Source of the DNA: Monocercomonoides exilis PA203
Taxonomy: Eukaryota > Protista > Preaxostyla
Length of the DNA: 64,000 nucleotides
Assembly (NCBI GenBank): GCA_001643675.2
Contig: LSRY02000009.1
Location: forward strand, 1-64,000
Direction: 5' to 3'
Position 1 is the stretch's first letter, and each line of letters opens with the position of its first letter. The position numbers and the translations under genes were made by a program. A model generated the notes under the pieces. The model was not told the DNA's origin. It was given only the letters and a program-made list of their open reading frames with translations, and did not search any database. Below, one piece after another: positions 1 to 51,742 of this stretch.

Positions 1-3000
1 CATAGAAATTAAAGCTTTCAGATCGTATTTCTCAGAATGAGAATGTTTTCATTGGCTTATTTTGGAATTCATAAAAGATGACGATAAGCTGAAGGAATTA
101 AATAGCAAGGAAAAGAGGCAGATAAAGAAGGAAGAAGATGAAGTTGCAAAAATAGTTGAAGGAGTTGAAAAAGAAATAATAAGAAAAAGATGATGACGAG
201 GAGGAAGAAGAAGATTATGAAAGCTATGAAGGTGGAGCAATTGAGAATTGTGAAACGCATTCAATCCTTTTAATAAAGATGTTGAAAATGACTTGAATGA
301 TGTCGACCGATAAAAACACATTATTCGATGAGTTGATTTCAGATGAAATAGACAATCTTTATCACAAAATATGTGAAAGGGAAAGAGATACAAACAGATG
401 AAGAATGAAGTCCACAAATCGTTGATTGCCTATGAGTGGTTGAACTGCTTTGTCCCTCACAAAAAGAAAATTGTGTTTGTCCGTTGGTGTTCATAATTCA
501 AACGAACGAAACGTCTGATGAGGATATTGGCAGAGAATAATTCGAAATCGAAGAAGGCGTTGACAATTGATGAAGTTGACTTCAATTGCAAAAATTTCAA
601 ATGAAATAAGAAGAAAATGACGAATTTTATGATTATGTGATTGATGTGTCGATTCTGGCAATGAGCATCTTTTATTGAAGTGAGACTGTTGAGAATGATA
701 GCGAAGGTGAAGAAAAATAGAAGATGTCAGGTTTTTCAAGTCACGTTGGGCGATAGAAAAAACTGAATGTGTTCTGAATGTGAATGACCATCCAGCTTAT
801 CAGCCCAGATAAAAGAGTCGCAACTGCAAAACATTCCGAACAAAAATGCCAAATAAACTGCTTTTCTCTTTCTTGCAAACTCATGTTAAGCATTGTCAGG
901 CTATGCAGCATGCAAAACAGATGGTAAGAAACGAATGACTTCGTTGAATGCAATCCAAACAAGAATCATCTCAAAACTTCTGGATCTTTTGCAAAGGATT
1001 TCAGGGCTTCCCTCTCTTTGTGGTATTCCTGTACTTGATCAATTTGTATTCATTGAAAGAACACCTTAAAAGAAAATGAATGAAATAAAAGAAAATCAAA
1101 CCATTTTTTTTCTTGAAATATTTTCCTATCTCCAACTCACTCGAAATGATCAGCCCACCTGGCTTTCTTGCAATATAAAATTTCCTCTTGCCACAAAAAT
1201 TCAGACAACTGGACAATAAATGGCTGGAATAGAAAGTCATTGAAAGCACAGAATCCATTGTGAAACGAGCTGTAATATCAGATTAAAACACATAATTCTT
1301 AAATAAACAAGAAATCAACTCTTTTTCAAAGACTTATTTAACGCCATTTCTTTGCTGATAGCTTTCCAACGGGTTTCGCGTAAATGGCGATGCGTTTGTC
1401 GTTAAGACCAGCTGAGTGTTTCGCTCTGTTCGCTTCCTCCATTGTCCTATGCTTCCAATTCCCTTTCCTTTCCACAAAAGAAAATCTTCTCCCAAATAAA
1501 AATCACGCAAAATAAGTCCTGAGCATAAGATATACCAAGTACACAACATTTCGCTCGAAATGAACAAGCTGTTCATTTCAACTTTTCTAACATTTTAATC
1601 GCTTTTTTTGTATCTTGCTTTATTCATTTTTCATTCAAAATATCACAGCCGATGTTGCATCATGTATTTTGCAACATATAACTTGATTCAAACTTCATGC
1701 AACTTCCCTCATCAATTCACTTTTTGGAAGCAATCGATGCAAACAGCCACCCGCTCCTCCATTTGAAGGCTAAATCCCTGTTCTTCTTCAATGCTATAAC
1801 TCGCATGAGTGCATCTGTGTTTGCGCTCAATAGTAGCTCAAATATGCTCAGGCTGCTGCAAATAATTTATCAAAAATCTTCACTAATAAAATTATAGGTT
1901 GCAGACCCTTATTAAATAACCAAACAATAAATGAATGTTTTGTTGCCCTTCGTCTTGCCTGTTTTGAGGTAAAAGAATGAAAATGATGCAGAGGAAAAAG
2001 TTTATGAATGTGCATCTTCAGGTATTTTAATCGATATTTGTGACTCTTTTGAAGTAGATGTTCCTTCAACATTCAGAAAATGAACCAATATGTTGCTTCA
2101 TCTTGATTTTTCCGAAGGCAGCAGGACCAGTAACAAATGTTTTATGGTGTGCATGGGGCATTACTGAATCACTGCTTATGCGATTTTATCTGTTCTTTTT
2201 TTATTATTATGAAATAAATAAATTTTTTATTGACTTTTGAAAGGGGCTTGGGCGATTGAACGATTTGAGGGACCTGGAGCAAAAAAGAGAAAAGCGAAGA
2301 AATGGATGAAATATGGGAAGATGTGAGATTTGAAGAGACGGGTGCGATTTGTGGAGTGGGTTGTTGAAAAGATAATCGAGAAAATTGTGGATGGAAAGGG
2401 ATTGGGGTTGGTGTTGGGATTTTGGCGTTGGAGTATCGGGAGATGTTTTGAAGGGCCAAAGGTTAAACGGGACGGTGGCTTGTTTTTTTCTTTGAAAATG
2501 AAAAGATTTGAAAGTAAGAATTCTGATGAAGAGAAGAAAAACGAAAAATAAAAGGATGAAATGCTCCTGTGGGAATGTTTGCAATGGAACGTAATTCTGA
2601 ATGAAGGCCTTTCAGTGGAATTGCTGTTGATTTGTGTGGCTTGCCTGCTGAAAGGTGTGTTGGAGAAAGAAGGAAAGGGAGGAGACTCAAAAGAAGTTGA
2701 AATGAGTTTGCTCGGCTTGAGTCATTTTCACACAACGTTCAAGTGTGTCTTTTTTTTTTCAATTTTTTATTTTTTTTTTGAAATGTATATATATTGAATA
2801 GGAAACAGACAATGAGTGATATTTGAAGGAAGAAACAGGAAGCTTCAAGCGCAATCAGTTGCAGCACGATTTGAGGGGACTTGTAAATGGATGAGTTTTG
2901 GAGAAATTGATGAAGTGTTTGATGAAGCGCAGAGATGGAGGAAGTTAGAGTAAATGAGCTGGGTTTTGGAAGAGAAGATTCAAAAGAAGTGAAAGAGGTG

Positions 3001-3910
3001 GGAACGCATGTGTATTGGAGAAGAGAATATGATGAGAGGATAAGAGAAGGGAGAGAATGACTGAACCCTGATGGATGTGATTGAAAGAAGATGAAGAAGA
3101 GGAATTTGAAGAAATCAACATTTTCAGTTTCTGAGGGGAAAGAGGAGGCAACCACTCAAGAGCATTCGATGAACGATAGATATCCAAATTATTTGATATG
3201 GCTCAATCTGTTTGTGAATTTTTTGTGTTTATGTTTTTCTTATCAATATGAAGTTCATTTGCCATATTCAATATTTTATCTCAATGACAGCATCACATGA
3301 AGCCTTTTCATTATCTTCTTCAGAAACATCATTCAATTGATTGCACATTTCTCTTTTACTTCATTTCTTCTTCTTATTCTTCTTTACCATCTTCTTCTTC
3401 ATTCAACAAAAATGAAGCAATTCTTCAATTAAACAGTGCTTTCTCCAAGTATCTTAATTTTTCTGAAAAATGTTTTTTTCATCTTTCAACGTAACTTATG
3501 TTTATTCTTTTTCTCTTTCAACAGTGTCTGTTGTATTCTAATAAATTGCTTGTATTGTTTCAAAAGCATGATAGATTTTGTTCAATTGTCAGATGAATTG
3601 ATTATTTAACAAATAACAAAAAGTGATGAAATGTTCATGTTATCAAAAAATGAAAAAGAAATGAAAATTGGAAAATATGTGAACTTCAAAAAAATTTTTA
3701 AAACATAAAAACAAATAATAAACGATATTAGAATGATAACGAATAAATGAAATAAAAATTCGATGAAGATGCAGTTTCAGATACATTTCTTAAAGGTGAA
3801 TTGTTTCTATTTCTTGTCGCGATGGTGGACTTTTAGCATTTTTATGAGTCTTCTTCAAAAATTTCTCAAGCACGTTATATTTTTCAAAACATTTTAATGT
3901 TGAAATAAAT

Positions 3911-4421
3911 AATGTGAATATGGTTTTTCATTTCATAAAATGCATTTTTATTTAATCATAAAAAAAATATTGAATATATACATATATATTTTTAAGACTC
4001 AATAAAATACAAAAACCAAAAAAAAGTCACCATTTCATGAAAATATGTCAAATTGAAAATCTCGATCACAAAAGTGGTCACTAATTTTTCTTCAGATTTT
4101 GCAACAAACAGACATAAAAAGATGTGGGGAAGCGGTTTGTGCGGAAATCTGAGAAAAAATTAGTGACCACTTTTGTGATCGCCAGTCATTTTGAAAAACA
4201 CTTTTATTAAGGTTCTCATCAGATTTGATCCGTTGAACGATCGGAACTATTATAAAACTGAAACTTGAATGACTGGCGATCACAAAAGTGGTCACTAATT
4301 TTTCAGATTTGCAACAAACCGCTTCCCCACATCTTTTTATGTCTGTTTGTTGCAAAATCTGAAGAAAAATTAGTGACCACTTTTGTGATCGAGATTTTCA
4401 ATTTGACATATTTTCATGAAA
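3911..4421. repeat. Left terminal inverted repeat (511 bp) with internal palindrome
   Basis: Starts AATGTGAATATGG. Internal arms 4033-4190 and 4268-4421 are reverse complements. GATCACAAAAGTGGTCACTAATTTTT occurs at 4064(+), 4155(-), 4278(+), 4365(-). Confidence 0.95.
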
Positions 4422-4699
4422 ATTTTCGTATAGAAATATTTATTTATTATTTATATTTTTTTTCATATATTTGTTTATGATTTATTGTTATTATGTTATT
4501 ATAATTAGTTTTAATGAGAAACATTTATGCGTTGATTTTTGGAAAAAGACAAAAAATAGTGATATCAGTTTCCAATATCAATTCATCATTTTAATAAAAT
4601 CAAATTGCATAAATACTTATTTTTGTGTGAAACATGGTGTTTTTCACCGAAAAAGAAATGTGACTTTTGTTCCATAATAAATTCAGAAAAATATAAACA

Positions 4700-7600
4700 A
4701 TGAATATTTCCAAACCTCAATCGACTCTATATTCTCGATGCAAAGTATTATGGAATGAAATTAAGCGCATCGGCGGAGATGACGTGGATTCGTTACTTGC
4801 CTATTTGTTTTATTCTTACAGGCAATCAACTTCTGTAATTAACGATTTACTGAAGACATTGAACGGTTTGATTTTTTATTTATTCATGTTTTATATAGAA
4901 AATTTCATGAACTGTCATTGTTGTTATTTTCTTAACTATTAATTCAATATTTTTCTCATGAACAGAATATCACATAAAGCTGCTGGAAGACCTGTCTGTG
5001 GTGTACAACAACGCTCCTTTGCACACTCAGACAGTAATGCTGCAAGCGCTGTCACGCAACACATCATTATCCGATTTACAAGACTATGGATATGATGTCA
5101 CAGAGGGAAAATTTATTTACGCGAAGCAAACGCTGAAGAAAAACCAAGGATTTATCATCACTCCTCTAAAACCTCATCTTCCGTCTTGCAAAAGTGGTTT
5201 GTTTTTATTTGAATTTTTTGAATAATTTTCTCTGTTCATTTTAGGCTTAAATGAACAGGGATTGGGAAAAAGGGCAACAACTGGATGTTGGCCCATTCAA
5301 CTGAAGCATCCACTTCTCTTCAATCAGCAAAGAAAAAGCAGCGAGCTGAGCCAGATTACACCAGATATATTGATGAAGAGCCTGGGAAAATGAAATTGTT
5401 ACAGAAAATTCTTCTTCAAAGAAAAAGAAATCTTCATTATCAGAAAAATCACATCAACAAAATAAAAAATCAAGTTCTATTTCGGAAAAAAATTCATCTG
5501 CATCAACTTTTTCATCGTCTGAAGCTATTGATGCTCCAATCAACACCCCAATAAGGAGAGAAAGGAGGTCAACAAAAAATAAAAAGAATAATTCAAATCA
5601 CAAACGTCACTCTTCTCCATCTCCAATACCAATTCACAAATTCTTCAAAACAAAACAATCGTCAACATATTCTTCTTCTTCTCCTCTTCCTCCTTGTTCT
5701 CCTTCTTCTTCTCCTCCTCCTCCTTCTTCTTCTTTTTCTTCTTTTTCTTCTTCTTCATCTTCTTCCTCTTCTTCAAATTCTTCTTCTTCAAATTCTTCTT
5801 CTTCTTCAAATTCTTCTTCTTCAAATTCTTCTTCTTCAAATTCTTCTTCAAATTCTTCTTCAAATTCTTCTTCTTCTTCTTCTCCTCCTCCTCCTCCTCC
5901 TTCTTCTTATTCTTATTCTTCATCTTCCCCATTTTTATCTTCATCTTCTTCCTCTTCATCCAAAAAGCAACAAAAAATGACAATCAATTCTTCATTAACT
6001 TGCAATTCTTCTTCATATTTAAGAAATGAAAATGATTGGGTGAGCAAGCAATTGCTTGAATATGTCACTTCTCCCACTCTTGTTCCTCCACAGGCATTTC
6101 AAGATCTTCTATCTTCATTTGCAAAAGACAGCAACACTTCTCCATCTCCACAAAACACTCATTCAGACGAAAGTTATAATTCAAATTGTAAAAATAATAT
6201 GAATATCATTTCAAATAATTACACAATGGATTTTCTTCCTGAAATTCAATCTCATTCTCCATCAATTTCTTCAAGTGTCAAAACCACTTCAATCGCTTCA
6301 TCAAAAACAAAGAAAGGATTAAAAAATCTTGGAAATACTTGCTATCTTGCCTCTCTCCTTCAATGTATATCTTCAATCACTTCACAAAAACAATCAATAA
6401 TTAAAACCATTTCATTTCAAAACAATTTATCTTCTCGAGTATTGAGTGTTTGTCAACAACTTACCAAAGATGGAATGACAGTGCGTTCATGGGTCCCATC
6501 ACTGATCAACAAATGGGAAGACTTTTGTGGATATAGAAGCAGACAGCAACAAAATGTCATCGAGGCGTTTGACAATCTTCACCAACTTCTTCAAAAAAAT
6601 GAGTTAATAAACAAGGATACCTTCAATCCTGTTTTAATCACACATTTCAAATGCCAAAAATGTCAAAAAATCACATCACACTTCAATGAAATTTGTGACA
6701 ATGTCGTTATCAATTCTTCTTCTCCTCACAACGGCCTATCTTCTCTTTTTGCGACTGAAGTTTTAAACGAAAAGAATTGTGTTTATTGCGATGAATGCAA
6801 GGAAAAATGCTGTGCTGCGAGATGGGAGGAAATGGCTGCATTTCCAGAGGTGCTAGCCCTCTGTCATGAATGCACTGATTCTGCTAGTTCAGCACCTTCG
6901 AGAACATTACTAATGGAAACAGACAGAGTCAATCAGCGCACGTTTTGTAAAGGATTTTCTTCTAAAGATATTCAACATCTTCAAAAAGATAATCAAGAAA
7001 CAATCATATATCATTTTTCTGGACAAATACTATTCAAACGTCTGGATCAACAAAACGGACATTACATCGCAGTTGTGAAAAGAAAAAGTGGAATCAATAG
7101 TTTTTGGAATATTTGCAATGATGAAAGTGTTTCTGAATTCGATAGTGACAAATGGAGTTCTTCATGGAAAGATCTTTATGTTCAAGGCTACGTTCCTTCA
7201 CTTTCATTCTACATCAAGGAAAAAACAAAACCAACACTGTCAACTCTTCAATTTGGTGGTTCATCATCTTCTTCAGAAACATCAAATAATAACACTTCAA
7301 ATAACTCATCATCATCGTCAACAACAACAACTGCTACGTCATCTGCATTCATCACACCACCTCATCGAACAACTTCCATTCCTCCACTCTCTTCGTCAAT
7401 TTCAACAAGTTATGGATTGGAAGCACTGAAAGAAAAACGAAAGAAAACGGGCATCTTTTCTCCCAACGAAAAGAGATTAATCTTCAAGCCCAAGACGAAA
7501 TTATGGAAAGAGTTTACAGAAGAAACAAATATCAAAATTTCTCTTTCCCACTTCTACAAGCTGACATCAAACTTCTCGAAAGCGAAAAGGCGTACTGATC

Positions 7601-8712
7601 TGTGTGGAATGTGTGAGAAGTTGAGCTATTTGGAGAATAAACTCAAATCTTCACAAAACAAAAATGGACTTTCTTCTGCTGAATTTCACACACTCAAACT
7701 TCTTCGTCAACATCGACTAGTTGCAGAAATGCAACGAAAACATTATCAATCAACAGTCGACAATCTGAAAGAGGGAGAAGCAGTCTTCGTCTTCGACTTT
7801 AAAGAAAAATGGAAACTCCCTATCAGAAAAAATCAACTTCAACAGGAATTCTTCAATTATCAACAAGTTTCTCAATTCACAATCATCTCTCTTCAAAAAA
7901 TAAATAATCAACTTGAAAAACGAACATTCAACTTCTTCTCCGACTGCCTCTCAAATGATCACAGATTTGTCATTGAGTGTCTGGAATCTGTGATCAAAAG
8001 GCACTTCTTCTCAGACACTCACACTTTTAAGTTCTTCTGCGATTCGGTACCACACAACCGAAATCGCTTCCTTCTTCACTTCATCCTCTCCAAACAATCG
8101 AAACTTCTCAAAAAGAAAAATACTCAACTCAACTTCTTCGCTGAGCACCATGGAAAAAATATCTGTGATAGTGAATTTGGTGCGTTAGTGAATGCAATCG
8201 ACAACAATCTTTCGACTGAACACATCACCACACTTCATGATTTGATCAACTTCTTCGAAAACAATATGAACACTTCGACATCAGCTTCTTCAACTTCACA
8301 ATCAAACATTTTCTCAACATCATCATCGAACTCTTCACCATCTTCAACATCTGTCAATAACTTTGAGCATGAGAGGTACTTTGAAGAGTATGTACCATCT
8401 CAGCAAATCTCATGGCCGTCATTGTCAGTCCCTCACATGAAGGACTACTTATATTTTGAGCGCAAGGGCTCATTTGTCTCTGCTTCAGCTGTTGGATATC
8501 TTCCTCAACGCTCTCTGGTTGCCCTCGAATCTTCAACAATGAAAGAAAAAGTTCAAAGATCAAGAAAGTCATTTCACTCTGATATCACATCATCTAACTC
8601 TTCTCTTCTTTCTCAATCTTCTCAAGATCTTCTTTCAAGGAGATTTGAGCTTCTTCTTGACTCTTCTTCTTTTAATGAATCTCAAAATTGTTCTTTTGGT
8701 GTCCCTTATTAA
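4700..8712 (+). CDS. Sola2-like DDD transposase with embedded USP (peptidase C19) domain; 3 exons, two apparent frameshifts in the 5' part
   Basis: Exons ~4700-4865, 4966-5196, 5245-8712 (GT-AG; the exon 1/2 junction is in frame). Frame is open 5386-8712. USP: GLKNLGNTCY (Cys 6340), QQNV, two CxxC, GHYIAVVK (His 7060), WNICND (7117). Transposase: CGMC (7603), VFDFKEK (D 7795), FCDS (D 8041), FFAEHHGKNICD (D 8167). Frameshifts sit at G-runs near 5264 and 5385. Confidence 0.85.
5670..5960 (+). repeat. Coding TCT/TCTTCAAAT low-complexity tract (poly-Ser/Asn linker)
   Basis: Repeats of tcttcttcaaat read SSSN in the transposase frame. The poly-F and poly-K ORFs in other frames are artefacts. Confidence 0.85.
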
Positions 8713-9608
8713 GAAACTAGTTGTTGTGTATGCTTAGCTGGCACTCTATCGGAAGGGTGCTGGACATGACTGTTCGTATTAGATATTGCAGCCCGAAGGC
8801 TGCAATATCCGGACCTGGATACGACGAACAGCCTCCCAGGTGCACAACAGTTAGAATCCGATTGTTTTCTTGTGCTTTTTGTCCCTATAATGTCCCTATT
8901 ATTGAATTGGTTATTATCCCTATAATAATTGTATTTATCGAGATTCATTAATAAAGAGAGTTGTGAGGGAATTCATTGATCTTTGGGTAAGGTTTTTGGA
9001 AGGGAGAGTTGTTGAGAGTGTGAAATGTTGTTTTATCATTGTGTCTGTCTTTTTTCTTTGTTGGATTTGATCTTTTTGAGTCAAAGTTAGAGAAATATCA
9101 GAAAGGGGAGAGAGGATAAAAAACAGATGGAAAATAGACAAGTTAGTTTTTGTACTTTTTATATAAGTATTCTTTTTTGTTTGGAATTGTCTTTGATACC
9201 ACGAATTTGTTAAATTTGTACTATTTCTTCTTATATTTTTTATTGTTCAAAATTGTTGATATTTAGTTGATATTTGGTGATTGTTTAATGATTATGTGAT
9301 TGAATTATGTTTCTTTTGAAAGTTGATGAATCTGATTAGAAAATTTCTGACTGTTTTCAATTTTTTAATGATCAATATTGTGAAGTACTTTTTGTTTTTT
9401 ATGTCATTTTGATTGCAAAACGATTGTTATTTTTTAACGTATATTTTTCACTTTTCATAGTAAATTTTTCCACTTGTTCACTAAACAATTTATTGATAAA
9501 CATGTTATATATTTATAAAGATATCAACAAAAATAAATTTTTCATAATAATCGATAATATTACAAAACAAATTTCAAAAATATATCATCATACAACAAAA
9601 AGCAAATA

Positions 9609-10124
9609 TTTCATGAAAATATGTCAAATTGAAAATCTCGATCACAAAAGTGGTCACTAATTTTTCTTCAGATTTTGCAACAAACAGACATAAAAAGATG
9701 TGGGGAAGCGGTTTGTTGCAAAATCTGAAGAAAAATTAGTGACCACTTTTGTGATCGCCAGTCATTTCAAGTTTCAGTTTTATAATAGTTCCGATCGTTC
9801 AACGGATCAAATCTGATGAGAACCTTAATAAAAGTGTTTTTCAAAATGACTGGCGATCACAAAAGTGGTCACTAATTTTTTCTCAGATTTCCGCACAAAC
9901 CGCTTCCCCACATCTTTTTATGTCTGTTTGTTGCAAAATCTGAAGAAAAATTAGTGACCACTTTTGTGATCGAGATTTTCAATTTGACATATTTTCATGA
10001 AATGGTGACTTTTTTTTGGTTTTTGTATTTTATTGAGTCTTAAAAATATATATGTATATATTCAATATTTTTTTTATGATTAAATAAAAATGCATTTTAT
10101 GAAATGAATAACCATATTCACATT
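9609..10124. repeat. Right terminal inverted repeat (516 bp) with internal palindrome
   Basis: Reverse complement of the left TIR, ending CCATATTCACATT. The 26-bp motif occurs at 9640(+), 9731(-), 9855(+), 9946(-). Confidence 0.95.
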
Positions 10125-11099
10125 TTATGACAATTATAAAAGCGACAATAATAGCAATCAGTGCGATAATTTACATCAAAAATGTGTCAGCCCGCGAATG
10201 GAATATCAATGAAAATTAAAAAATATAAAATCCACATTCAGAAATTTATTTGAAAGCGATTCTTTTTTTCATGAGTATTTTTTTGTGATTCAACTCGTAA
10301 ACATCAAATGCTTGCTGTTCATTTCGTATGCGGCACAAGGCACATATTGCAATCTGTTCTATGCATCGAACGCAAACTCTGAAGCGAATATAAACCGAAT
10401 ATTAGTGGATGAAAAGCGAGAGACGAACGACACGCTTTTTCGGATGCAAACCCCTCTGTGTAATTCGCTCGCAAGTTCCACTTACCGGACAGTCTGTACA
10501 CATACAATGGGAGAGAGTGTGGCAGCTTTATGGGGTCATATTTTGGATGTAACACATTGCTGATTCAGATTAGTGTGGTGTTAGCAGTGGAAAAAGAGGA
10601 TGCAATGGTTTCATCCAAGGGCTTAACATGACAACTTTGGACATGTTCAAATTGACATCGTGTGTGGCAGATGCGCTGGAGAAGGAGAAGATCATCCGGC
10701 CGAATGAGATTGTGATTGTGGAGCAGATGCAGTGCATGTCACTTGAAGAGGAGGTATTTGAAGAGGCGAAGCTTGATGCGCCCAGAGCAGCAAACTTTGT
10801 GGACCAGCAAGTGAATACAGCTATTTTCGGTTAATTTTAGTTTTTTCTTTCAAGATTGCCTGGATTTTCGAAGGAGAGGGAGGTCAGGAAAGCAGAAAAG
10901 AAGGCAAAATATTTTGAGCTTGATTAAAGAAAAGAAAAAAAATTCCAAACAGATCGACTTTGGCAATGACGAAGATTTGAAGCGATGTGGTGTGAGTTGA
11001 ATTTTTCTTTTAATAATAACAAAAAATTTTTGTGTGTTAATTTTTTAATGTATTTTTGAATTTTTGAAATTTTCTGAACTTTTTCCATCATTTATTATG

Positions 11100-14000
11100 A
11101 ACTTCATCTTTTTCTTGTGAGTTGGCCGAATCGGTCATTATATGATGTGTTTATTTACAATCTTCATCGAATTTTTTGTTTGGGCCCCCTCTGCATAAAA
11201 ATCACCGATTCATTCAATCTTTCCAGTCAGATTGGACTCATTCAAACAATTGCTAATAAGCTCTGTACAAGATGTGATGAAGGCGCTATTCCTGACTTGA
11301 TAATGTTTGTCATATTTTTATCTTTTTGTTTTCATTGTTTTTATCATATTTCTTGTTTTTATTTTTTTTAACTTTTCAAACCCTCATTTTAATTTTTACA
11401 ATTTATTGATACGTAAACATATGAACAATCTCTTTTTTTGTTATAATTTCATTCAGTTTCTTCTTTTTAGAGTGGGCAATGGGTCTCCTCCACGATCACC
11501 TACCACCGTTTGTGTCATCATTGGAGTCAGAGCTGATGAAAAAGACTGAACCGGGAACCCTCTTCTGCGCATTTGGCTTCCTCTATTGTCACTGTGTTGC
11601 AGCTGACTGTTCATTCCACATGAAACGAGACTTCCTCTTCTCACAGACCACTAAACATTTCTTCTCTTCGTCGTCAACTTCTTCTTCTTCTTCTTCCTTC
11701 TCAAATCAGTCATCCACAAACCGCTTTGTAGTTTCCATGATCGAAAAAGTCAAATATACATCGCAAAATGCAGGAATTATCTTCTCTTTCCAATAAAAGT
11801 TCTCCTCTTTTAATGTCACTCCTTATCTTCTGTGAATGACACTCCATTCAAACACCACAGATCTCCTTCTCCTCCTCTTTTTTTTCTTACTTTGCCTCAA
11901 TAAATGATTTCAGCTTCCATCAAATGCTCTCTTTCCTCAAATATCCTCGACAGATAGAACATCTTTTTTGTGTAACATCACAAGCACAACCAGAGCTGCC
12001 ACGAGCCATCAATATGTGGATTCTTGCAGATCTTCAACATCTTCCAACTCATTCCAACGTTCTTCTTCTTTTGCAAGAACCTCCTTCCACCAAAAGGACA
12101 TCATTAGGCAGATTTCTTTGTTTCATTTACAACATTCAACCACTTTCGCATCTGCAGCCAGCTCCCCAATCAAAAAAGTCGTCTCTTTCTTCCTTTTTAC
12201 TCAATTTGTGCCACAGCTGCTGGGTATTTCAAGCACAGGTATTTATTAACAAAAAACAATAGACAGAAAAATGGAGTCTTTTGCATCATTTATTTTATTT
12301 AGCTAACAGCAGCGTCGGATGATGAGTTGAAGAAATTATTGTTCCCAAATGAGAAATTCATTAATGATATGGAGGTTATTTAGAGAAAGAAGGAGGAAGA
12401 GAGAAGGAGAGAGAAAAAGTGAAAAAGAAGGAAGAGAAATTGAAAAGACTGAAGATGAAGATAAAGAGATATCTGCGGAGCTATGCAGATGAAATATCAA
12501 CACTTTCTTCTTCAGCCTCTTCTTCTACACCAAATTCTGTTCTGAAGCTGCTCTCACATCAATCCATAGCATCCACCACTTCTCGGCTCCAATCAGAAAA
12601 CACGAGAGCCTTCGGCGTTTGGTTGCAGATTATTCCAATGACAGACGATTTGACAGAAGAATGTGTGTTTCCGGTGTGCGAATGTTTATGAGATAGAAAC
12701 AGACAAATGAAACAGAACAGGCATGGTCATAGAAATAATCATTATCATTGACATCAATACAGAAATCATCATCATCATCACATTTTTCTTCATCTTCCTC
12801 TTCATCCGAACAGTCAGAAGTGAATTCATCACAAGAAAGAGCAGAAAAAGCAGAAATTGATGAAATCATTGAACACTTCAAAAGAAAACATGCGCCGCGT
12901 CTGCTACTTCCTATGTTCGTTCCTCCACAAGAAGTAACCCTACAGAATCCGTCTTATGTGTCACGAAGACAAAGACAGAGAAAAAGCAATCAAAATTCTA
13001 TACAAACATTTTTGACTTATTCGACTGCTGGCAAAAGTACAGTAACAGGAACATCTCCTTCTTCATTGCCGAATAAATCTTTTCTTTCTCTTCCTCAGTC
13101 ATCTCCTTCACCCTCTCCTTCATCTTCATCTTCCTCATCTTCATCTTCATCTTCTTCATCTTCTCCAGCAGTAACTGACCTCTCTATCCATCCAAAACCA
13201 CCTCATCGCTCTGAAATTGCTATGGCGCGATGCATAAGAGCAACGCATCCTCTCTTCCTCAGATGCTATTTCAACCGCTGTGCACAAGTGGCTGCTGCTT
13301 CTGGTGCTTCGCGTTCTTCTTCCTCCTCTTCTTCTGTCAACCAATCAGAGCCAATTTCATTCAGAATCCATTCTTCTGCTTATTCCTCCATTCCACCTGC
13401 CATTTCAGCCACTTCTTCATTCAATTCCCCCACCTCCTCCATCACAAAGACACAAACTTCAACCTCTTCTTCTTCCTCTTCTTCTTTCTCTTCTTATTCT
13501 TATTCTTCTTCGTTGCTGCGCTTTTCTTGAAACAGATTTCCGACAGGCAAAGAGCAGCAGATTAGGAGGATGAAGCAATCGTTCGGAAGTGGAAGGAAAA
13601 GGCAACACTTTTTTCTCGCACAAGATGTGTTTGAAGCGCTGCAGCTGTTTGCAGAGTTTCGGATGGTGGAGCGGTATTCGGAGAATCTGGAGAAAAGGAT
13701 GAGAGAAAGAGAAAGAGAGAGAGAGCGAAGGAAAGAAAGAGAGGAGCAAGGAACGAGAGAAGAGAGGAGAGAATAATTAGAGAACTGATTAAGATGAGGA
13801 AGGCATTGAAATCTACAAATGATGAAAATAACAATGATGATGAAAAAGAAAATAAAGTGAAAGCAGAAGAAAATGAGAATTTATCATTGATTAGAAGAGA
13901 TTCTTTGAATGAAACCAAGAAAAATGAAGAAAGTGAATGCTTTTCCGACAGCTCCATCATCAGTGATGAAGAAGAGCGAAGAGAGAAGAGACACAAACAG

Positions 14001-16920: not shown

Positions 16921-17309
16921 AGCTGTTCAAAGACGAAAAGAAAAAAGAGAAATAACTATTATTAGTAAATTGGTTTCAATAATTTTGTTTTCTTATCGTT
17001 TTTTCGTTCTTATTTTAAATTTTTTCTTTTCAATGTTTTGTTTTTTCAGTTTAGAAATATCTATTTTCCTTTTAAAGATTGATTTTTCTTTTTTTTTTTG
17101 AAACTTGATCAAAAAACTCTTTTTAATGAAAAAAAGGTATGTTTTTTTGTTCTTATAAATTTTACAAATATATATGACAGAAATAAATGCTAAATACTTG
17201 CAAAAAAACAAATTAACTCTTTGATCAATAAATACCACTATAGATTTATTTTTTCAATTTTTGATCTTTTTTTATGATATCAAAAAAAATCACCCATATG
17301 ACCTGACTT

Positions 17310-18240
17310 TAATTTGTGTACCATGTCTTTTGAAAGTTTCATTAAAGAAAGGTGAAGGCGTGGAAATTCAATTGGAAGTGGAAGTGGCTTTACTGGCTTT
17401 GAGCAATATTTTTTTAAGTGTATGTTAATTTTTATTTCATTTTTGAAGTTATTGATTTTTTCCGATTTTTATTAGGAAGTGCCAAAAGAACTGTATTTGA
17501 ATGAAATCAAAGAGATAATCCAATATCATCAAGAGCATCACAACCTCACTCGACTTGCCTATCAATCTTCTTGGAATTTTTTGATTTTCAGATTGGTCAA
17601 TGATGAAAGCTTGGATGAAGTGATTGTGAATGAACTGCATTTCGCAAGAGAAGCATCAAGAGAATTGGAAGAATTGTCGAAATGTGTGGATTGGAAGAGA
17701 AAAGAAGAAGAAATGTGCAAATAAGAAGCGAATGGAGTGCAAGTTATTAAGGGATGGATGAAAACATTGGTGTGCTTCTATGAAAACTGTCTGTTGTGGA
17801 ATGAAGAATATGTTGGACTTTTAAGCAGCATTGTTCGGATATATCGAACAGCGAAGGATAAATTCAGAGAAATTAGCTGCTGGTGTGTTTTTTCCTTGAG
17901 AAATGCAGCGAGTGACGGAGCTGTACCAGTTGATGACTTGCTGAAAAGTGGAGCAGTTGATGCTGTTTTGGAGAAGATTCTGCAACAAACATTAAATAAA
18001 GATTTTATGCGTGATTATTTGGATTTCTTTTTGAAGATTTCAGAAAGACAAAAAGACGAGGAGAAAGACAAACTGAAGGAAGCGAAAAGAAAAGAGTTGA
18101 AAAGAAAGATATTTGAAGAGCTTGAAGAAGAAGGATACGAGGATATCATCACAAGTTTTCATGGAACTTTTTGTTTTCTGAGCAGAATACACTATCTTTT
18201 TTTGTCGTTGGATGTTTCAGTTTATTTTGTAAACGTTTAG
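17310..18240 (+). pseudogene. Repeated ~430-aa gene family, copy 1 (5'-truncated, internal stop)
   Basis: Family motifs KELYLNEIKEIIQYHQEHHNLTRLAYQS, ELHFAREASRELEEL, EEEGYED, YFVNV*. In-frame TAA at 17722. Upstream exon retains only CVPCLLKV...ALLALS. Confidence 0.85.
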
Positions 18241-18489
18241 CCAAATTCTTTTCATTTGGCTTTGTTTCTCTAATTTTCAATTTTTCTTTTTTTTTTTCAT
18301 CATTTCACTGACGCCAAAGATTATACAAAATGAAAGGCTTTCTTTCAAATTATTAATTTTGCAAGCATAATTTTGTTATCAAACAAATAAATAAAGCAAA
18401 AAATCATCAATTTGTTGGGAAATCTTTCATAAAGAACCAAATAAAAATTGTTTCTTTTCAAAAATTCTCGTTCAGAATAATGTTTTGTG

Positions 18490-24470: not shown

Positions 24471-24899
24471 AATCATTTCTCTTTTGAAAAATTTCTGCAA
24501 ACTATTTTCATCCGAAAAGAGTTTTTTTTTTAGGAAAAAAATATTTCTCTCTTCAAAAAAATTTCGATCGAGAACAATGAGATCAACAAAAAATTCGTTG
24601 CTTTTATTTGGTTTTTGTGAAATTTTTATTGTGTTTAGTTATTAATTTGAAATTTTATATTCAATAAAAGAATTTCTAAGGGTTTAATTTTTTTGAATGT
24701 TCTTTTATGCTATTGATAAACTTATCGAAATATAATTATTAAAATGTTTTTTGGCTGGGATGATATAAACGGATCATACCAAAAAAGAAGGAAAGATAGA
24801 TAGATTGATAGAAAAAAGATAAAGAAAAAAAGAAAAACATAAAAACAAAAAGATCGAAAAAGAACGATTTTTGAGTTCAAAAATTGAATGAGTTTCATT

Positions 24900-26380
24900 T
24901 TATAAAACATTAACATAAAAATCTGAAATATTCAATGATATTTTAAAATAATATCGTCTGTTAAGAAAATTCAGTGTTTCATGAAGGCTTGTGATGACAT
25001 CTTCATACCCCTCTTCTTCCATCTTTTCGAATATCTCTATTTTTGTTTACTTTCTTCCCTTTTCATCAGCTTCACCATCTGTTTTTTCTTTCAATCTTAC
25101 TGAAATGGCCAAAAAGAAACTCAAACAATCCCAAGAAACTTCACCTTCCAAAGTTGATTGCTTCATTTCCTCCAAAACAACTCCAATGTTTCCACATTTC
25201 AACAAAGTGCAAACCCTTGCATGTTTCATTTGTGATTCAATTCTTAATGAATCGAAGCATTCATTGCAAATTTCTTTGTAATTATCTCTTGACGCTCGAA
25301 ATAATTGAACGACTCTGCCGACAAGGCCAGCAAATACTTCATTTCTTAAATTGCACGATAATATGTTTTCTTCCATCACAAAGAACCATCTCTTAATAAT
25401 TAGCACTTCTTTCATTTCTTTTTCTCCATTTTTCTCTTCTTTTTTCAACCAATTAACATATTTTGAAAGTTCATCCAATTCCTTTGTTGCCTCTCTTATA
25501 AAATGCAGCCCATTCATAATTAAGCTTATCAAACTTTCGTCACACAAATGTCGATCAATCAAAAACTGCCAAGCAGATTGATAGGAAAGGCGAGTGAGGT
25601 TTCGATGCTCTTGATGATATTGGATTATATCTTTGATCTCATTTAGGAAAAGTTCTTGTTCGACAAACTAATAAGAAATAAGAAAAATATCAATAAATGA
25701 AGCAAAAACAATTTAATAAATTTATCAATTTAAAAATCACACATTCCACTTGGAAATATTACTCAATGCCAAAAGTGCCTTTTTCACTTCCTTTTGGGCT
25801 TCATCGCTTTCTTCTTAATTCGATGCAACTTTCAGAAGGCAGGACACACAAACCGAAAGCAAATGGGATGTGAAGTTGCCGCTCAGAGAAAGATAGCATT
25901 CGCAAAGATCAACAAGAAGCTTATCATCCTTTTCTTCTTTTTTCTTTTCTTTCTCAAAAATCATCTCTTTTAATCTTCCTCTGAATTAAGAGAGATAAAA
26001 GCCAATACCACATTCATTTCTCAGCACAATGCGGTATCCCGCATGCTTCAGCAGCACGAGAGCGTTATCCATCGATAGTTTCTTTTCTTCAATCTTTTGG
26101 TGTATTTTATTGACAGTTCTTCTGTAAACACAGATGTGAATTTTTCTTCATCCATCTCTTCCATCAATGCATTCATTTCAAGAATTTTTTCTCTGTTCAC
26201 CTTCATCGAAATGCTCCAGCTCAGAAAACAATGCTTCAAAATTACAAAGAAAGAAAGAAATTCAATAAATATGAATTCAACTGTAACAACGATTGCAAAC
26301 CAGTGAAATTTTCGGTGACGCTCATTTCCTTCGACTTTTTGCAAAATGCATCATTCGGAAGACATCAACATTCTTATCAA
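24900..26380 (-). pseudogene. Repeated gene family, copy 2 (frameshifts and stops)
   Basis: Same motifs (LHFIREATKELDEL, EEEGYEDV, DFYVNVL*) and same intron positions. Stops at ~25047 and ~25816. 5' end approximate. Confidence 0.85.
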
Positions 26381-28119: not shown

Positions 28120-31093
28120 TAAAAAAAAAAAATAAATAAATATATAAATAAAATATATATAAAAAATAAATAAATAAATAAATAAAAATAAAAAAATAAA
28201 AAATCAGCTTTTATTGTGTTTTGTGAGCCATGCGATTGATGAGATGCTCGGCATCGAGGAAGAAGAAGATGATGATGAGAAAAGCAACTGTTGGAGGCTG
28301 AGAAGCCATTTGGTTTGTTCGACAAAGGGCAACTTCAATCTCAGCAAGGCCGAGTCATTGTTTGGTCTCTATCAGCCAGGCGGAGCAGAAGAGTCTTTTG
28401 TTTGAACATGGATAAAGATCAAAAGGAAGTGGCACTTATTTTTTATTAATATTTAGGAAAGAAAGAAGAAGACTTGCTGTTGGAGAAGAATGACTGAAAT
28501 GGAGCAAAAGAGAAGAAGGAATGAGACATTTATTGTTGGATGGATGGTTCACTCGACCTTCAGGCGAATGGGATGCAGAATCGATTTTGTAAGGTGAAAC
28601 AACAGATTGGAGAATATCATCTGTCTTTGTCTACGGCAATGGTGCAAATGGAGATATTTTATGGAGGAAAAGAAAAAGTGTCATTGTTGTTGTCGAAGGG
28701 AGAAATAAAAACAGCTCAACAATTTCAGCTGATGCCAAGGAGCACCAAACCGGCTGAGAAGACAAAAAGATGAAAAAAGCGAATAAGAATTGCATGTTCA
28801 GCTGAATTGACAGGAAAACGTTGTGAAAATACATCGATCGAAGATTATTCATGCATCAACATTATTTCATCTGATAGCGCGCCAGTCGCAACAGAAATGT
28901 TTCAATGGCCAATGACTGTTTCATTCAACGCACAAAATGTTTTTTCTGATAGCGCTATTAATTTTGGTGATTCTCGTTTTGCTGAATATTCTGCTGGAAA
29001 TACAGCTGACTTCTTCTCATATGGCTCAACTTCACCACAAGCCACTCCGACAGAGAGAGGAATTTTATTCACTATTTCTATTCATCATCTTCTTCATCTT
29101 TTGTTGCCAACAACCATTTTTCGGTGATTTTTATCTTCATCTTCTTCCTTTTTTGGGATAGTGATTAAGTGAAAATTGAGCGAATCTGATTAAAATCCAT
29201 TCTTTTTGAGCATTGCTCGAATAGATATCCATTTTAGAAATTCTTTTTTGGAAAACATTTCTGACATTCACATTAACACAGATGAATGAAACATGGAGAA
29301 GATGGTTAAAGATTAAAAAAGTTACACAGAGAAGACAAGAAAGTCAGTCCAACCGAAAAGAGAGACAAGTCACTTTCACAGAAATGGATTTGGCACTTTC
29401 TTTTCATTGAGTATTTTTTTGGAGAATTATTATCAAGTTCTGACAGAACAACTATTTGATTCGGAATTCAATTTGTGGGACATTTGAAGCAGAAGGCAGG
29501 TATTGAATATCCAATGGCATTTGTATCTTCATGATTTTCTTCATCTTCATTGACAATTCAATAAACTCTCTCAATCACTGATTTATTCTTCAACATTTCA
29601 TCCATCTTTCGATGGAACAGTTGATTTCTCATTCATTGTCCATCTCTCTTGAAGCTAATCTCTTTCGATCAAAATCATCATTTTTCATCTTCATCACCAT
29701 TTTCCAAAAACACATTTTGTTTCATATTCTTCACAACAAACTATCAACAAACATGAAACGTTCAACATCTGATTTTTCTTCGTTCTTCTTGTTCTTCTAT
29801 CATCATCATAAAAAAAAAAGCATGAGAGTTTTAAACAGAATTTCTTCATTTTCTTCTTTTTCTTCTGCATTTTGAGTGTCTATGAAAACAGAAAAATTGG
29901 AGAATGGAAGAGAAAAGGCAAAGGAAGACGTTCAATCGAACATATCAACCATTTACATCAAAGCTGTGAATTCATTCGCTATGTCTTTTCAATTCATTCT
30001 CAACAAGCCAATAAGAAAGGTTTGACATTTGAAGGTATACATTGCATTTGTATTGGGTTTGAGAAAAAAGGGGATTTGGAAGAATGGATTTTTGGAACAT
30101 TTCATGAATTGAAGAAAAATGGAGAAGAAAAGAAGAGAGAAAGGAAAAGAACAATTTTGAACAGAGAATGAGAGAGATCAGTCAAGGAAACTGAATAAGG
30201 ATGGAAAATGTTTGATGAATGAAGAAATATTTATTTACGCGACAACATAGCAGCCGAAGGGGAAATGCAATTGGAGCAGAACTTTTGGATGATTTTGTGA
30301 GAAAAGAATGTGAGTGAGGCATCCTCTTCTTCTCCATCAATAAGAAAAAGCAGAAGAAAACAGAATGATGAAAGAAAAAGGAAGAGAAAGAGATAGAATT
30401 TGAGTGAAATTATGAAGAATTGTATTTTGAGATGAAATGAATGAAACGAGTGTTATTATTCAAGAAGAAGAGATTAAAGGAATCAAGAGAAAAGCGAAGG
30501 AAGACAAAAGAAAAGAAAAAGAATAAAGAAATATGAAAGACTGAACAAAAATGAGAAGAATGTGAAGAGCAATTAATTCTGATTGACTTGTTCTTTCATT
30601 CCCATTCTGAAATGGAGCATTGGATTGGATTCTTTTTCAGCCATATTACATATAGAACTCATGAAGTTGAAATCTGTATTCTTCAACAAGCATTTCTTCA
30701 TTAATGCTTTTGCATTCTTCTCAAGAATTGTCATTTTATTTCTTCTTCTTCTCTTTTCGAGTTGATTGAATTTGCAGAGAGAAAGAGAAAAAGCAGAGTT
30801 ATCCAGAATTTTCAAGAGGAATTGTATGTGAAGTTAAATTTTCTTTATTCAAATAAAAGAATCTTTTTGAAGAAAATGTTATGAAAATCTTTGTTTAATG
30901 AAGATTCTTGATGAAAATAATTGAAAAGATAAGAATGGAATTTTTGCTTTTTCTTTTCTATTTTTTTTTTTAATAAAAAAGGAAACAAAAGCAATAATAA
31001 AAATTTTTCAATCTATTTTTTGTAATTTTGCGAAATGATGATAATTGAAAAAGACAGTTTTTTGAGTGAAAAAATAAAATGAATTGAATTAAG

Positions 31094-32527
31094 TTAAACA
31101 TTGACAAAATATTCAGAAATATCCATCGATAACTCATTGCAACCATTTTTGCATAGAAAAGAAAATATTCCATGAAAGCTTGCAATGATATCTTCGTATC
31201 CTTCTTCTTCCATCTTTTCATATATCTCCATTTTTGTTACTTTTCTTTTCGCTTCTTCCATTTCATCCTTCTTCTTGGCTTTCATTTGTCTTGAAAAAAT
31301 CAAAAAGATATACAAAAAATTACTTATAATGTTATCTTTCAAAGTTGGTCGATTCATTTCATCTATAAATGGATTAATGGCACTTTCCTTCACAAAAGCA
31401 TCAATTTCCATGTTTCTCTTTTCTGCTGCATATTTAAGTGAAAAGAGGCATCCATTGCGAATTTCTTCATATCTGCACCTTGATGAGCGAAACACCTGAA
31501 CAATGCTGCCGATGAGTCCAGCAAGTTCTTCGTTCCACAATCTGAATATTTGAAGGTAATAAGCAGTATTATTGAGCCATCTCCTGATAATTATCAATTC
31601 TATTCTTCCATTTACTTCTTCTTTTCTCTTCCAATCCACACATTTCGACAACTCTTCCAATTCTCTTGATGCTTCTCTTGCGAAATGCAGTTCATTCACT
31701 ATGACTTCATAGCTTTTGTTTCTGATAAATCTTTTTATCAAAAACATCCAAGCAGATTGATAGGCAAGCTTTGTAAGATTCTGATATTCCTGATGATACA
31801 GGATAATTTCTTTGATTTCATTCAAATATAGTTCTTGTTCGATAAACTTATTAAAAACGGAAAAAATAAATAATATCAATAAGAAAAAAGTTTTCATACA
31901 TTAAATCCTAAAGATGCCAAAGCCAACAACGCAATTTCCGCTTCTTTTTGAGTCTCCTTGTTTTCCTCTTTATTCAACGCAACTTTTAGGAGACAAGGCA
32001 TACAAATCGATAATGATTCATGTGGGAAATCATAGCTCAGAGAAATATAGCATTCGCAAAGATCAATAATAAGCTTTTCTTTTTTTTCTTCTTTTTCCTT
32101 CTTCTCTTCTTTGACAATCATCTTCTCAAATCTTTTGTTCAGCGAAGACGAATCAAAACATGGATTCCACACGTTTTTCAGCGCTTTGCAATATCCAGCA
32201 TGTTTCAGCAGCAAAATTGCATTTTCCATTGACATTTTCTTTTCTTTAACCATTGTGTGAATTTCATCAAACAGTTCTGTCTTGAAAACGGATTTCCATT
32301 CTACTTTATTCATTCCATCAATTATTTCATTCATTTCTTCAATTTTCTGTTTCTGCACAATTTCACCGCAGCGCTCAAGCTCAGAAAACAAATCTTTAAT
32401 CAATTTATTAATTACCGAAAGCGCTGAACATTCAAAAAATTGAAAAAATTCACAAACTTAAAAACTTTCCTCCAAAGGATAGCTCCTGAACATCATCATT
32501 GGATTTGTCTTCATCACACACATCCAT
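31094..32527 (-). CDS. Repeated gene family, copy 3, intact (438 aa, 3 exons), unknown function
   Basis: join(32527-32458, 32393-31900, 31846-31094). GT-AG introns of 64 and 53 nt restore one frame ending YFVNV*. Confidence 0.85.
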
Positions 32528-48914: not shown

Positions 48915-51699
48915 CAATGAGTAAAAAACCCGGGACATGGTAAAAAACCCGGACTTTTTGAATATTGTAACTGCATTTTGTTTCATTCAAATATGTTCAA
49001 TTGGCCGATATGTTTTATGTTTTATTCAGTAATTAATGAACATTTGGAGATTTTTTGAATTGAGAATTGTATTAAAAAACAATTTTTGAATTTTTTCAAC
49101 GAATTCAAAGACGTTAATGTGAAATGGTATTTCTTAAATTGTCAAAATTGTTGATGTGGGACAAAATATTTCTCTTCATGCATTTTCATTGAAAAATTAT
49201 GCACTTTTCATTGACTTTTTTGTATCAAAAAACACAATAAAAATGGATCCATTTTTTAACATTCGTGAAATGTTGGAAATTTTTATGTTTTGATTTCAAT
49301 AATTCCTTTTTGCGGATATGAAAATCAAAAATTTTTTGAAATCTGACAAAGTTTAAAAATGTTATAAAAAAAACAATTATTTCATGCTTTGTACATAAAA
49401 AGCTTGAATGTCCGTATTTTCCCCCATGTGATATTATTTAAAAAAAATGAAAGTTGCTATCTACGCAACTTAAGTTTCTTCCTATCCAATGCTCAGTGAA
49501 TTTCATCCTTTGTCTTTTCTAAATTCAGTTAACTGGAAATGAAGAATTGAAGAAATTATCACAAAAAAAAAAAAAATCAATACAAGACAAACAATGAATT
49601 CAAAGTCAAATATTTAAAAGTTTGGCAAAAAATTGGATTTGATTTTCAACAAAAAGAATTTCTAAACAAACTTAATAATATTTCCATCTATTCGTTATCA
49701 TCATGCTGTATTTTATATTTTTTGCTTTCAAATTGAGTTGTATCTTCTGCGCTTTCCTTATGCTAACTTTTCCATTCATCTTTTTCGTAATCTTCGTCAT
49801 CTTCATATAAAAAGTCGCTGTCAATTTTTTTCTTTCTTGTTCTGATGATTCTTTTGGTAAAATTGCTTCTATCAGAATTGGTACGGTGATCTTTGTCATT
49901 GAATAAATTATCTTCTGTTTGTGTGCATCCATCAATGCTGTGTTTTTCATCGATTTTGATATCCATTTTACACTTTCTTGATGATTTGATTTTCCGTTTT
50001 GGTGTGAAAGAATCAAATAGTTCCTTTTTTGCTTCATCTGAAGAAGTTATGGAAGAAGATTTTGACGGTGATCAACTTATTATTGATAGAACTTGAGAAG
50101 CTGCTAGTGGCCAGATTCCTGAATTCAGAAAAGCAGTTTTAATTACTGATGGAGTGGTCGCTGCAGCGATGGCCTCTGGTAAGACCTCAGCAAGTGCCTT
50201 TCTATATAAAGAAGATGAATCATCGATTGGAACTTTGAAATCATTGTGTAATGTTCTTTTCAATCTGGCAAATATCACATTGTCACAGGGCTGGAGGAGA
50301 TGGGTCATGTTAGGGGGAAATGTTTTTATGAAAATTCCGTTATTTTCAGTTTCCATAATGACTTCTGAACATGTATGGGAAGAATGGTTATCAAGAAGAA
50401 GGAGAGCCTTTTTCGAAGATGTCGATTGGATTTTTTGATGAATGAGAGGAATCCAATTTTGAAGCATGATGATTTTATAGATTTCAGTGGTAATCCATCC
50501 TGAAGGTGCAGCAATATAGTTAATATCGAAAAATTTTTAATTAGAAAATTCTTCTGGTATTTTCTTCTTTGGAAAAAGCAAAAAATGAGGAAGATGAGAA
50601 CCATCTGAGCACACGCAAATACATAAAGTCGCGTTTGAAGATTTTCGAGGCTCAGGAGGAGAAGGAGGGATTTGGTCCTTCAAACAGATGACCAACTTTG
50701 CAGAACTTTCTCCAATTTGTACAGAAGATTCATCGAAATTAAAAATATTTGTCACTTCGATATTGTTTCCTTCTACGATTTCTTTCACTTCTTCAAACCA
50801 GCTAATCACACTTTCAGGGCTCTGTGACCGAATTTTTGCAATTTCAAGCGGTCTTGCCAGGGCTGCCTTTAATATGGAGCTTCTTTGAACTAAATAATAA
50901 GATAATTTCGGATGGAGTTTCTCGTTTTCTTCTTCATTTGTTGATTCCGTATTTAAAATGTTAATTGCCTAAAAAAACATAGATAAAATAACTAACATAT
51001 CAAAAAAACGAAAACCATTTCCTGTATGTGCTTCATTCGAACTACAACTCCTTCTGATAATAAAGACAAAACCTGATTCTCAATTTTTTCCAGTTTTTCA
51101 GAATTTATAAGAGATGGTCTTCCTTCTTTTCCAACATCTCTGTTTTCCTTTTCAGCTGTTTTGCTTCTGTACCAATCCTGCCTTGTTATTGCTTTCGCTT
51201 TGACTTCGACGTTCACTGTCAATGGATATGTTTTCTTGATTTCAAAAATTTTTCGAGATCTGGAATGAATTGTCCGATATTCTCTTGTTGCAGCTATCCG
51301 AAGAAGCTCTTCCGAAGTAATTGATTTCTTTTCCTTTTCAAAAAAGGGAATGATCACAATGAGCAAAATGGTTAAAATATTGTTTGAAAGTCAAATAAAA
51401 CAAACCAACCGAAAACAGTTAAAAATACGGTTTGATAATTTCATTTCACTTTCAATTAGCTTTATTTCATCTTTAATTTTCAACTACAAATAAGAAATGT
51501 CGAATAATCATCTTATCTGATGAACAACAGTTGAAGGGAAGATATTCATTGAAACAATTTGAAAAGCATTAACTTTCCAACTTATAATGTTATATCAGAG
51601 CATTTTTTGTTTGAGCAAGCAAATGTTTTAATGAAAGAAAAAAGTTCTTTTTTTTTAAAGTCCGGGTTTTTTACCATGTCCCGGGTTTTTTACTCATTG
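48915..51699 (-). mobile_element. 2785-bp pogo/Fot1-like (Tc1-mariner group) DNA transposon
   Basis: Perfect 43-bp TIRs CAATGAGTAAAAAACCCGGGACATGGTAAAAAACCCGGACTTT (48915-48957, 51657-51699). TA on both flanks (48913-14, 51700-01). Internal DDE_1-type transposase. Confidence 0.95.
49763..51366 (-). pseudogene. pogo-family DD35D transposase, intron-containing, with in-frame stop(s)
   Basis: FNFDES (D 50734), SGWIT, LLLDNHSSH (D 50392), FPPNMTHLLQPCD (D 50284); 35 residues between the last two Asp. 47-nt intron 51015-50969. In-frame TAA at 50537 splits the catalytic domain. TGA at 50072 may be the true or a premature end. Start not resolved. Confidence 0.88.
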
Positions 51700-51742
51700 T
51701 AAAAGAAATTTTTTGATGAGCAAGAAAATGAAATGAATTTCT

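Follow-up and report, generated by a model that had tools for sequence, protein, structure and literature searches.

Results

A ubiquitin-specific protease within a transposase gene

The DNA analyzed here, referred to as the window, is a stretch of 64,000 nucleotides from the genome of Monocercomonoides exilis PA203 (contig LSRY02000009.1, positions 1 to 64,000 of the forward strand). Between long inverted repeats, the window holds a candidate DNA transposon whose main coding part is a long open frame. A previous interpretation, made from the letters alone and called here the sequence-only reading, proposed that this frame encodes a ubiquitin-specific protease (USP), a linker and the catalytic core of a transposase. 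These three parts were confirmed, and frame 1 was found to be uninterrupted from position 5377 to a TAA at 8710-8712 (1111 codons). The gene contains the following features:

4674-4688, plus strand: motif TTCCATAA-TAAATT, just 5′ of the ATG and conserved across subfamilies
4700-4865, plus strand: exon 1, beginning with the ATG at 4700; 166 nt in all copies checked
4866-4965 and 5197-5244, plus strand: introns 1 and 2, short, with GT-AG borders
4966-5196, plus strand: exon 2, 231 nt in all copies checked; N-terminal domain common to USP-less Sola2-like transposases
5245-8712, plus strand: exon 3, holding the long frame 5377-8712
6316-7158, plus strand: USP/UCH (peptidase C19) domain, Pfam UCH PF00443
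6340-6342, 7060-7062 and 7120-7122, plus strand: USP catalytic codons for Cys, His and Asp, respectively
from 6544, and at 6652 and 6787, plus strand: QQQN box, and the two CxxC pairs of the zinc ribbon
7249-7260, plus strand: QFGG motif, about 14 residues past the USP fold
7441-8300, plus strand: Sola2-type transposase, with a CxxC...H module followed by an RNase H-like DDD core
7603-7614, 7795-7797, 8041-8043, 8149-8157 and 8167-8169, plus strand: transposase motifs CxxC, D, D, HGK and D, respectively

The gene model was derived from an alignment of ten subfamily representatives, in which variation at third codon positions was confined to the exons; the exons were then examined singly, unjoined. 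Intron length ranged from 47 to 104 nt across copies. The three-exon gene was intact in 15 of the 20 copies checked, with exon 3 open for 1047-1295 codons in them. In the window copy, small insertions and deletions (+1, +1 and -1) at about 5258-5380 place exons 1 and 2 out of frame with the long frame. Sequencing reads cannot separate true indels at these positions from assembly errors, because reads from paralogues pile up there. The gene is intact in a near-twin of the window copy on contig C24 (copy L021). The window copy has Val next to its second catalytic Asp, at a place where other copies have a nearly invariant Gly, and a (TTC)n tract at 5670-5957 of exon 3 is translated into poly-Ser. 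The motif upstream of the ATG is a possible core promoter.

The USP region matched the Pfam UCH model with 45.5 bits (cut-off 23.9, E 9.3e-12) over profile positions 2-245 of 254, and the PDB proteins nearest to it by sequence were USP21, USP15 and USP2. The complete USP fold claimed by the sequence-only reading was thus upheld, with the Cys, His and Asp residues, the QQ box and the CxxC pairs all located. The NLGNTCY Cys box, the QQQN box, both CxxC pairs, GHY and CND were invariant in 23 intact copies. A Ser/Thr linker joins the USP to the transposase part, and the edge of this hypervariable linker adjoins the QFGG motif. The closest cellular USPs showed only about 24% identity to the USP of the element, and the donor gene could not be named. 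The best-scoring UCH domains of the genome (C46:204129-205403, C18:971861-973780 and C36:2171498-2173009, among others) lie in more than 12 giant open frames of 3,000-10,690 codons that are unrelated to the transposon family.

Assignment of the C-terminal domain to the Sola2 type

No Pfam model matched the C-terminal domain, and among its relatives DUF7869 was matched in just 12 of 73. The CxxC, the three aspartates (with 81 and 41 residues between them) and the HGK motif described by the sequence-only reading were found at their positions. A phmmer search of 1.84 billion representative sequences with this domain returned 627 relatives. In an alignment of 73 relatives, residues D119, D201, H237, G238, K239 and D243 were invariant, and D53, C55, C58 and H91 were nearly so.

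Structure prediction with AlphaFold from the single sequence was unusable (pLDDT 37), and the 73-sequence alignment was used instead, giving a model with pLDDT 86.8. In agreement with the earlier expectation of an RNase H-like fold, the elements of this model are predicted in the order strand-strand-strand-helix-strand-helix-strand-helix, as in RNase H-like enzymes. The modelled positions of the three Asp residues, on beta1, after beta4 and on the helix following beta5, are those expected for such a core. The top ranks of a Foldseek search with the model were occupied by the IstA, Hermes and Mos1 transposases, and a structure search independent of Foldseek gave Z values of 9-10.6 to retroviral integrases and to the cores of Mos1, Metnase, TnsB and IstA. 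A feature search of the ESM Atlas gave no usable match.

The assignment to Sola2, which had been made on the basis of motifs, was substantiated by comparison with the protein PPL_04538 of Heterostelium album (P0100). This protein aligned with the window domain over 253 residues (BLASTP 1e-24; phmmer E 8.9e-17), the alignment spanning the CxxC and all three catalytic motifs, and it matches over long stretches the Sola2_PPa-1 transposase as printed in Additional file 3 of Bao and Jurka 2013 (PMC3627910). The motifs are likewise present in the Sola2_DFa-2 sequence of the same publication. These comparisons identify the C-terminal domain as a Sola2-type DDD transposase.

We also analyzed the relation of the USP to the N-terminal part of the protein. 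Neither the exon 1 nor the exon 2 peptide matched a Pfam model, and pairwise BLASTP of the exon 2 peptide against P0100 gave no match. A profile built from the exon 2 peptides of several copies matched USP-less relatives from other organisms in a 172-protein set, in the segment that directly precedes their catalytic domain (best E-values 2e-7 to 8e-5). This N-terminal domain and the core are separated by 40-120 residues in the USP-less relatives versus about 730 in the M. exilis element, which makes the USP and its linkers look like an insertion between the two, in line with the location of the USP between N-terminal exons and core in the sequence-only reading.

Copies, lineages and age of the family

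The assembly (82.3 Mb in 101 contigs) was searched for further copies. The USP part gave at least 122 matches (58-100% identity) and the transposase part at least 99 (83-100% identity). At least 115 copies belong to the main family, and in about half of them a frame of 1050-1300 codons is open. Copy L040 and at least four others form a diverged lineage that has the same order of parts and a 450-residue linker. The USP of L040 is 36% identical to that of the window and matched Pfam UCH with 40.9 bits (E 2.4e-10).

A search with the protein MONOS_18616 (P0010), which begins within the end of a USP domain, revealed some 60 further Sola2 copies with 44-100% identity to P0010. In 12 of these about 60 copies, a Pfam UCH match was found 0.5-1 kb upstream of the transposase match on the same strand, and in several cases both matches reported the same open-frame length (992, 916, 919 and 926 codons). 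The P0010-type lineages, like the outer flanks of the elements, were judged by coordinates. Other deep Sola2 lineages of the genome likewise have an in-frame USP, which shows that the fusion is old and has radiated. Both domains in a single frame, for which the sequence-only reading had proposed a genome search, thus recur in dozens of copies. Altogether, the element is present in well over 150 copies across several old lineages of M. exilis, and the family makes up roughly 1% of the genome.

Outside M. exilis, searches for a UCH domain were negative in the long relatives that rank among the top 150 representatives, in a Blattamonas homologue and in the loci of seven metagenomic relatives. The closest database proteins were all entries of the type 'uncharacterized protein MONOS_...' from M. 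exilis, where copies of the element are annotated just as fragments. In the published M. exilis genome, 46% of the sequence was assigned to repeats, mostly unclassified (35% of the genome), and the element is not described there (PMC8767320).

Four segments of 1-1.4 kb elsewhere in the window (17304-18306, 24853-26307, 31032-32399 and 51696-53123) are 66-70% alike and occur in both orientations; they probably belong to a dispersed gene or repeat family.

Selection and gene conversion

Pairwise Nei-Gojobori estimates of the ratio of nonsynonymous to synonymous divergence (dN/dS) were obtained between subfamilies. The values were 0.13-0.22 for the USP, with synonymous divergence (dS) of up to 1.6, and 0.03-0.09 for the transposase core, whose motifs were invariant in the 23 intact copies. 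Both domains are under purifying selection, which for the USP answers a check put forward with the sequence-only reading.

In the transposase core (window 7471-8300), dS was 0.2-0.6 for nearly every pair, even for copies with identical USP parts; between the window copy and L002, for instance, dS was 0 in the USP and 0.285 in the core. These values suggest that gene conversion between copies has often affected the conserved core.

A structured element downstream of the stop codon

The long frame is followed by two conserved regions:

8713-8862, plus strand: structured element of five helices, directly past the stop codon, with a conserved T-run after it
8863-9450, plus strand: conserved non-coding 3′ region, with mean pairwise identity across subfamily representatives declining in the 3′ direction, from 0.93 to 0.63

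The first region (150 nt) retains 93-94% identity between subfamilies that are saturated at synonymous sites, and over most of the second the nucleotide divergence between subfamily representatives is lower than the synonymous divergence of the coding part. In L040 (positions 2322-2465, minus strand) the same junction sequences were found, with the helices rebuilt from different bases. In an ordinary MAFFT alignment, 16 of the 45 base pairs change on both sides with pairing kept. Shuffled controls gave 2.0 ± 1.1 such pairs, with none of 500 reaching the observed number, and slid controls gave 0-4. The structure was assigned to the sense strand because of its many G-U pairs. Searching the genome with a model derived from the alignment gave at least 115 strong matches and about 21 weaker ones, and those that could be placed lie right after the stop codon of element copies. 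Rfam 15 gave no match in 8713-8862, even at E values up to 1, and in the inverted repeats it gave only sub-threshold hairpin look-alikes. These data indicate that the 150-nt sense-strand structure is part of the element.

Terminal repeats and flanking DNA

The borders of the element are formed by the following features:

3752-3910: imperfect outer section of the left terminal repeat region, where likeness to copies of different genomic context sets in at about 3752
3911-4471: left long inverted repeat, 561 nt, a nested palindrome, with a 22-nt motif at 4064, 4159, 4278 and 4369
9556-10124: right long inverted repeat, 569 nt, with the 22-nt motif at 9640, 9735, 9855 and 9950
10125-10285: imperfect outer section of the right terminal repeat region

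The two window repeats are 95.6% alike, and their outer 359 nt are perfect. The terminal inverted repeats announced by the sequence-only reading are therefore present, although their extent had to be revised from 515 bp to 561 and 569 nt, with weaker inverted homology reaching about 3752 and 10285. Inverted repeats surround 17 of 21 copies, with lengths of 175-1611 bp that vary by subfamily. The 22-nt motif occurs four times per repeat and is perfectly conserved in two subfamilies.

With respect to the flanks shared with other copies, the core is flipped in L028 (contig C8) relative to the window, and likewise in L024 relative to L025. These flipped cores fit an inversion through recombination between the long inverted repeats. 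Flanks of the window type were also found around only 750-960 bp, at C80:918334-919231, C17:511060-512020, C53:67217-68179 and C33:730552-731300. Of these sites, those on C80, C17 and C53 each hold one palindromic repeat arm, and no repeat match was listed for that on C33. All four sites look like recombination remnants and not like empty sites. Their arithmetic fits a deletion through recombination of the palindromic repeats.

To the right of the element, positions 10800-13100 of the window hold a 2.3-kb repeat that occurs at least 30 times and lies beside many element copies. In six copies belonging to subfamily D, the most diverged one, this repeat is also found about 14 kb upstream in inverted orientation. 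All the stretches of C87:23107-32882 that were compared, taking in the left flank, the inverted repeats, the right flank and the 2.3-kb repeat, were about 99-100% identical to the matching stretches of the window within 3252-13100; this locus probably reflects either a very recent duplication or redundancy among the assembled contigs.

Discussion

In our judgment, the window probably contains a decaying copy of a DNA transposon of the Sola2 superfamily of M. exilis that has a USP inside its transposase. The identity of the enzyme, the inverted repeats, the 22-nt motif, the many decayed copies and the single-arm remnants all point to a transposon. The fusion of the USP into the Sola2 transposase is real, family-wide and selected, as observed in its architecture, its spread over the genome, its age and the purifying selection acting on it. 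Intact members would encode, in three exons, one protein of about 1,200-1,400 residues composed of an N-terminal domain, a Ser-rich linker, a complete USP, a second Ser/Thr linker, and the CxxC...H module with the DDD core. The N-terminal domain may be the DNA-binding part, and the transposase would cut and paste the element. The USP, whose activity is predicted from sequence, may strip ubiquitin in cis, either from the transposase itself or from chromatin or host factors at the element. By analogy with proposals on the VTD and OTU deubiquitinases that Helitrons carry, the benefit could be a shielding from proteasomal turnover or from ubiquitin-dependent restriction.

Several observations weigh against the interpretation of the repeat-bounded piece as a mobile transposon. 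The long inverted repeats are unrelated between subfamilies, even though the catalytic cores are 92-98% identical. Matching target-site duplications of 2-10 bp were not seen at the ends examined in nine copies, the best candidate in the window being TGAA vs TGAT, and a search for empty sites between flanks returned full elements or single-arm remnants and no empty site. In addition, all the close copy pairs compared have flanking DNA in common, in two cases with the core inverted. Recent expansion of the family therefore resembles segmental duplication, to which it may be largely due, or else the mobile unit extends beyond the repeat-bounded piece and possibly beyond 3752-10285. As for the gene, the window copy is frameshifted, with exon 3 in phase open for only 48 codons, and no splice joints were seen in the available sequence runs, which are DNA unitigs of the same sample.

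Some of these observations can be accommodated in other ways. The 6.2-6.5-kb piece between the repeats could be the core of a larger unit of 10-25 kb, with the long inverted repeats being internal structures and not ends. We consider this possible but rather doubtful. The flanking segments 1013-3751 and 10286-12412 accompany the element in about 15 places, the 2.3-kb repeat is placed as would suit such a unit both beside many copies and, inverted, upstream of the subfamily D ones, and the published dictyostelid Sola2 elements are 10-15 kb long with terminal repeats of 12-22 bp. On the other hand, the window-type and L032-type flank contexts lose their likeness at the same points, about 3752 and 10285, and the flanks contain no long open frame. 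The shared flanks of sister copies would also be expected if the genes had ceased to be a transposon and now formed a multigene family of the host, one that arose from a transposase-USP fusion and multiplied through segmental and subtelomeric duplication, and the same holds for the location of many copies within 30 kb of contig ends, for the strong selection on the coding sequence and for the failure to see target-site duplications. This origin appears improbable in view of the more than 115 copies, many of them with stops and truncations, of the long inverted repeats that enclose 17 of the 21 copies and the single-arm remnants, of the invariance of the DDD triad and all motifs of the catalytic core, and of the several deep lineages with many copies each. 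Such a pattern is typical of transposon families, whereas domesticated genes are usually single copy.

Two further alternatives concern the function of the USP. It might act mainly as a processing protease: with the FGG imitating a ubiquitin tail, it would cleave its own polyprotein behind this motif and so free the catalytic transposase from the N-terminal half. The GG about 14 residues past the USP fold, at the edge of the hypervariable linker, is invariant in 23 copies, including the diverged L040, as this proposal would have it. However, no GG was seen at the matching place in the P0010 lineage, and USP enzymes normally require the body of ubiquitin for substrate binding, so we regard self-processing as an unlikely main role. 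A USP lying between DNA-binding and catalytic parts would also be compatible with tethering, that is, with a ubiquitin-binding module that steers the transposase to ubiquitinated chromatin and whose catalysis is unimportant. This seems very unlikely to us, because the Cys, His and Asp boxes, the oxyanion Asn and the zinc ribbon have remained invariant over synonymous divergences greater than 1, which argues for retained catalysis.

Sola2 DNA transposons were reportedly described by Bao and colleagues in 2009. The transposase of the M. exilis element is homologous to those of Sola2 elements DFa-2 of Dictyostelium fasciculatum and PPa-1 of Polysphondylium/Heterostelium, with which it has in common the RTDxCxxC module, the DFKE, xDxxxH(F)(K/R) and (Y/H)HGKxxxD motifs, a DDD triad at similar spacing, and an N-terminal domain ahead of the core (PMC3627910). 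It differs from them in the USP located between N-terminal domain and core, in its inverted repeats of 175-1611 bp as compared with 12-22 bp in dictyostelids, in having no Fanzor passenger, and in the structured RNA past the stop codon. Sola2 elements also generate a 4-bp AT-rich target-site duplication; no such duplication could be shown at the M. exilis ends examined.

Proteases of ubiquitin-like modifiers are known from other DNA transposons; Ulp1/C48 SUMO-protease cargo occurs in Mutator-like, CACTA and Zisupton elements. Those enzymes act on SUMO and are usually encoded by separate genes or as terminal fusions, in contrast to a domain embedded in the middle of a transposase. A closer functional parallel is found in Helitrons and Helentrons, which carry VTD domains with deubiquitinase activity as well as OTU domains, and for which a protection of the transposition proteins was suggested (Erven et al. 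2022, PMC9741609). As in the M. exilis element, a cysteine deubiquitinase lies there in the frame of the transposition enzyme, its catalytic residues are conserved in autonomous copies, and the proposed role is the protection of transposition proteins from degradation; the difference lies in the combination of VTD or OTU with a rolling-circle RepHel, as opposed to a USP/C19 domain with a DDD cut-and-paste enzyme in a metamonad host. The sequence-only reading knew of no C19 USP fused to a Sola-type transposase, and in agreement with this the papers that we could search yielded neither a description of a USP/C19 domain within a transposase, whether Sola-type or another cut-and-paste enzyme, nor one of this M. 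exilis family.

The covarying RNA element constitutes a second, independent lead. It is conceivable, although we would not expect it, that both accessory parts are essential together, the USP being needed to escape ubiquitin-dependent turnover or silencing and the 150-nt structure representing a new class of functional RNA required in cis, for which a ribozyme, a transposase-binding RNA or a small RNA polymerase III RNA would be candidates. If this were true, the transposon would have two accessory functions unseen in cut-and-paste elements.

The USP class appears to be new for transposons, and here a textbook USP fold is found within a DDD transposase. The natural sequence variation among copies suits structure-function work, and selection on the catalytic residues is clear. 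What transposon-borne modifier proteases do for their element is a question that this family can address, and because M. exilis can be cultured, the link between ubiquitin and transposition is directly testable in the host itself.

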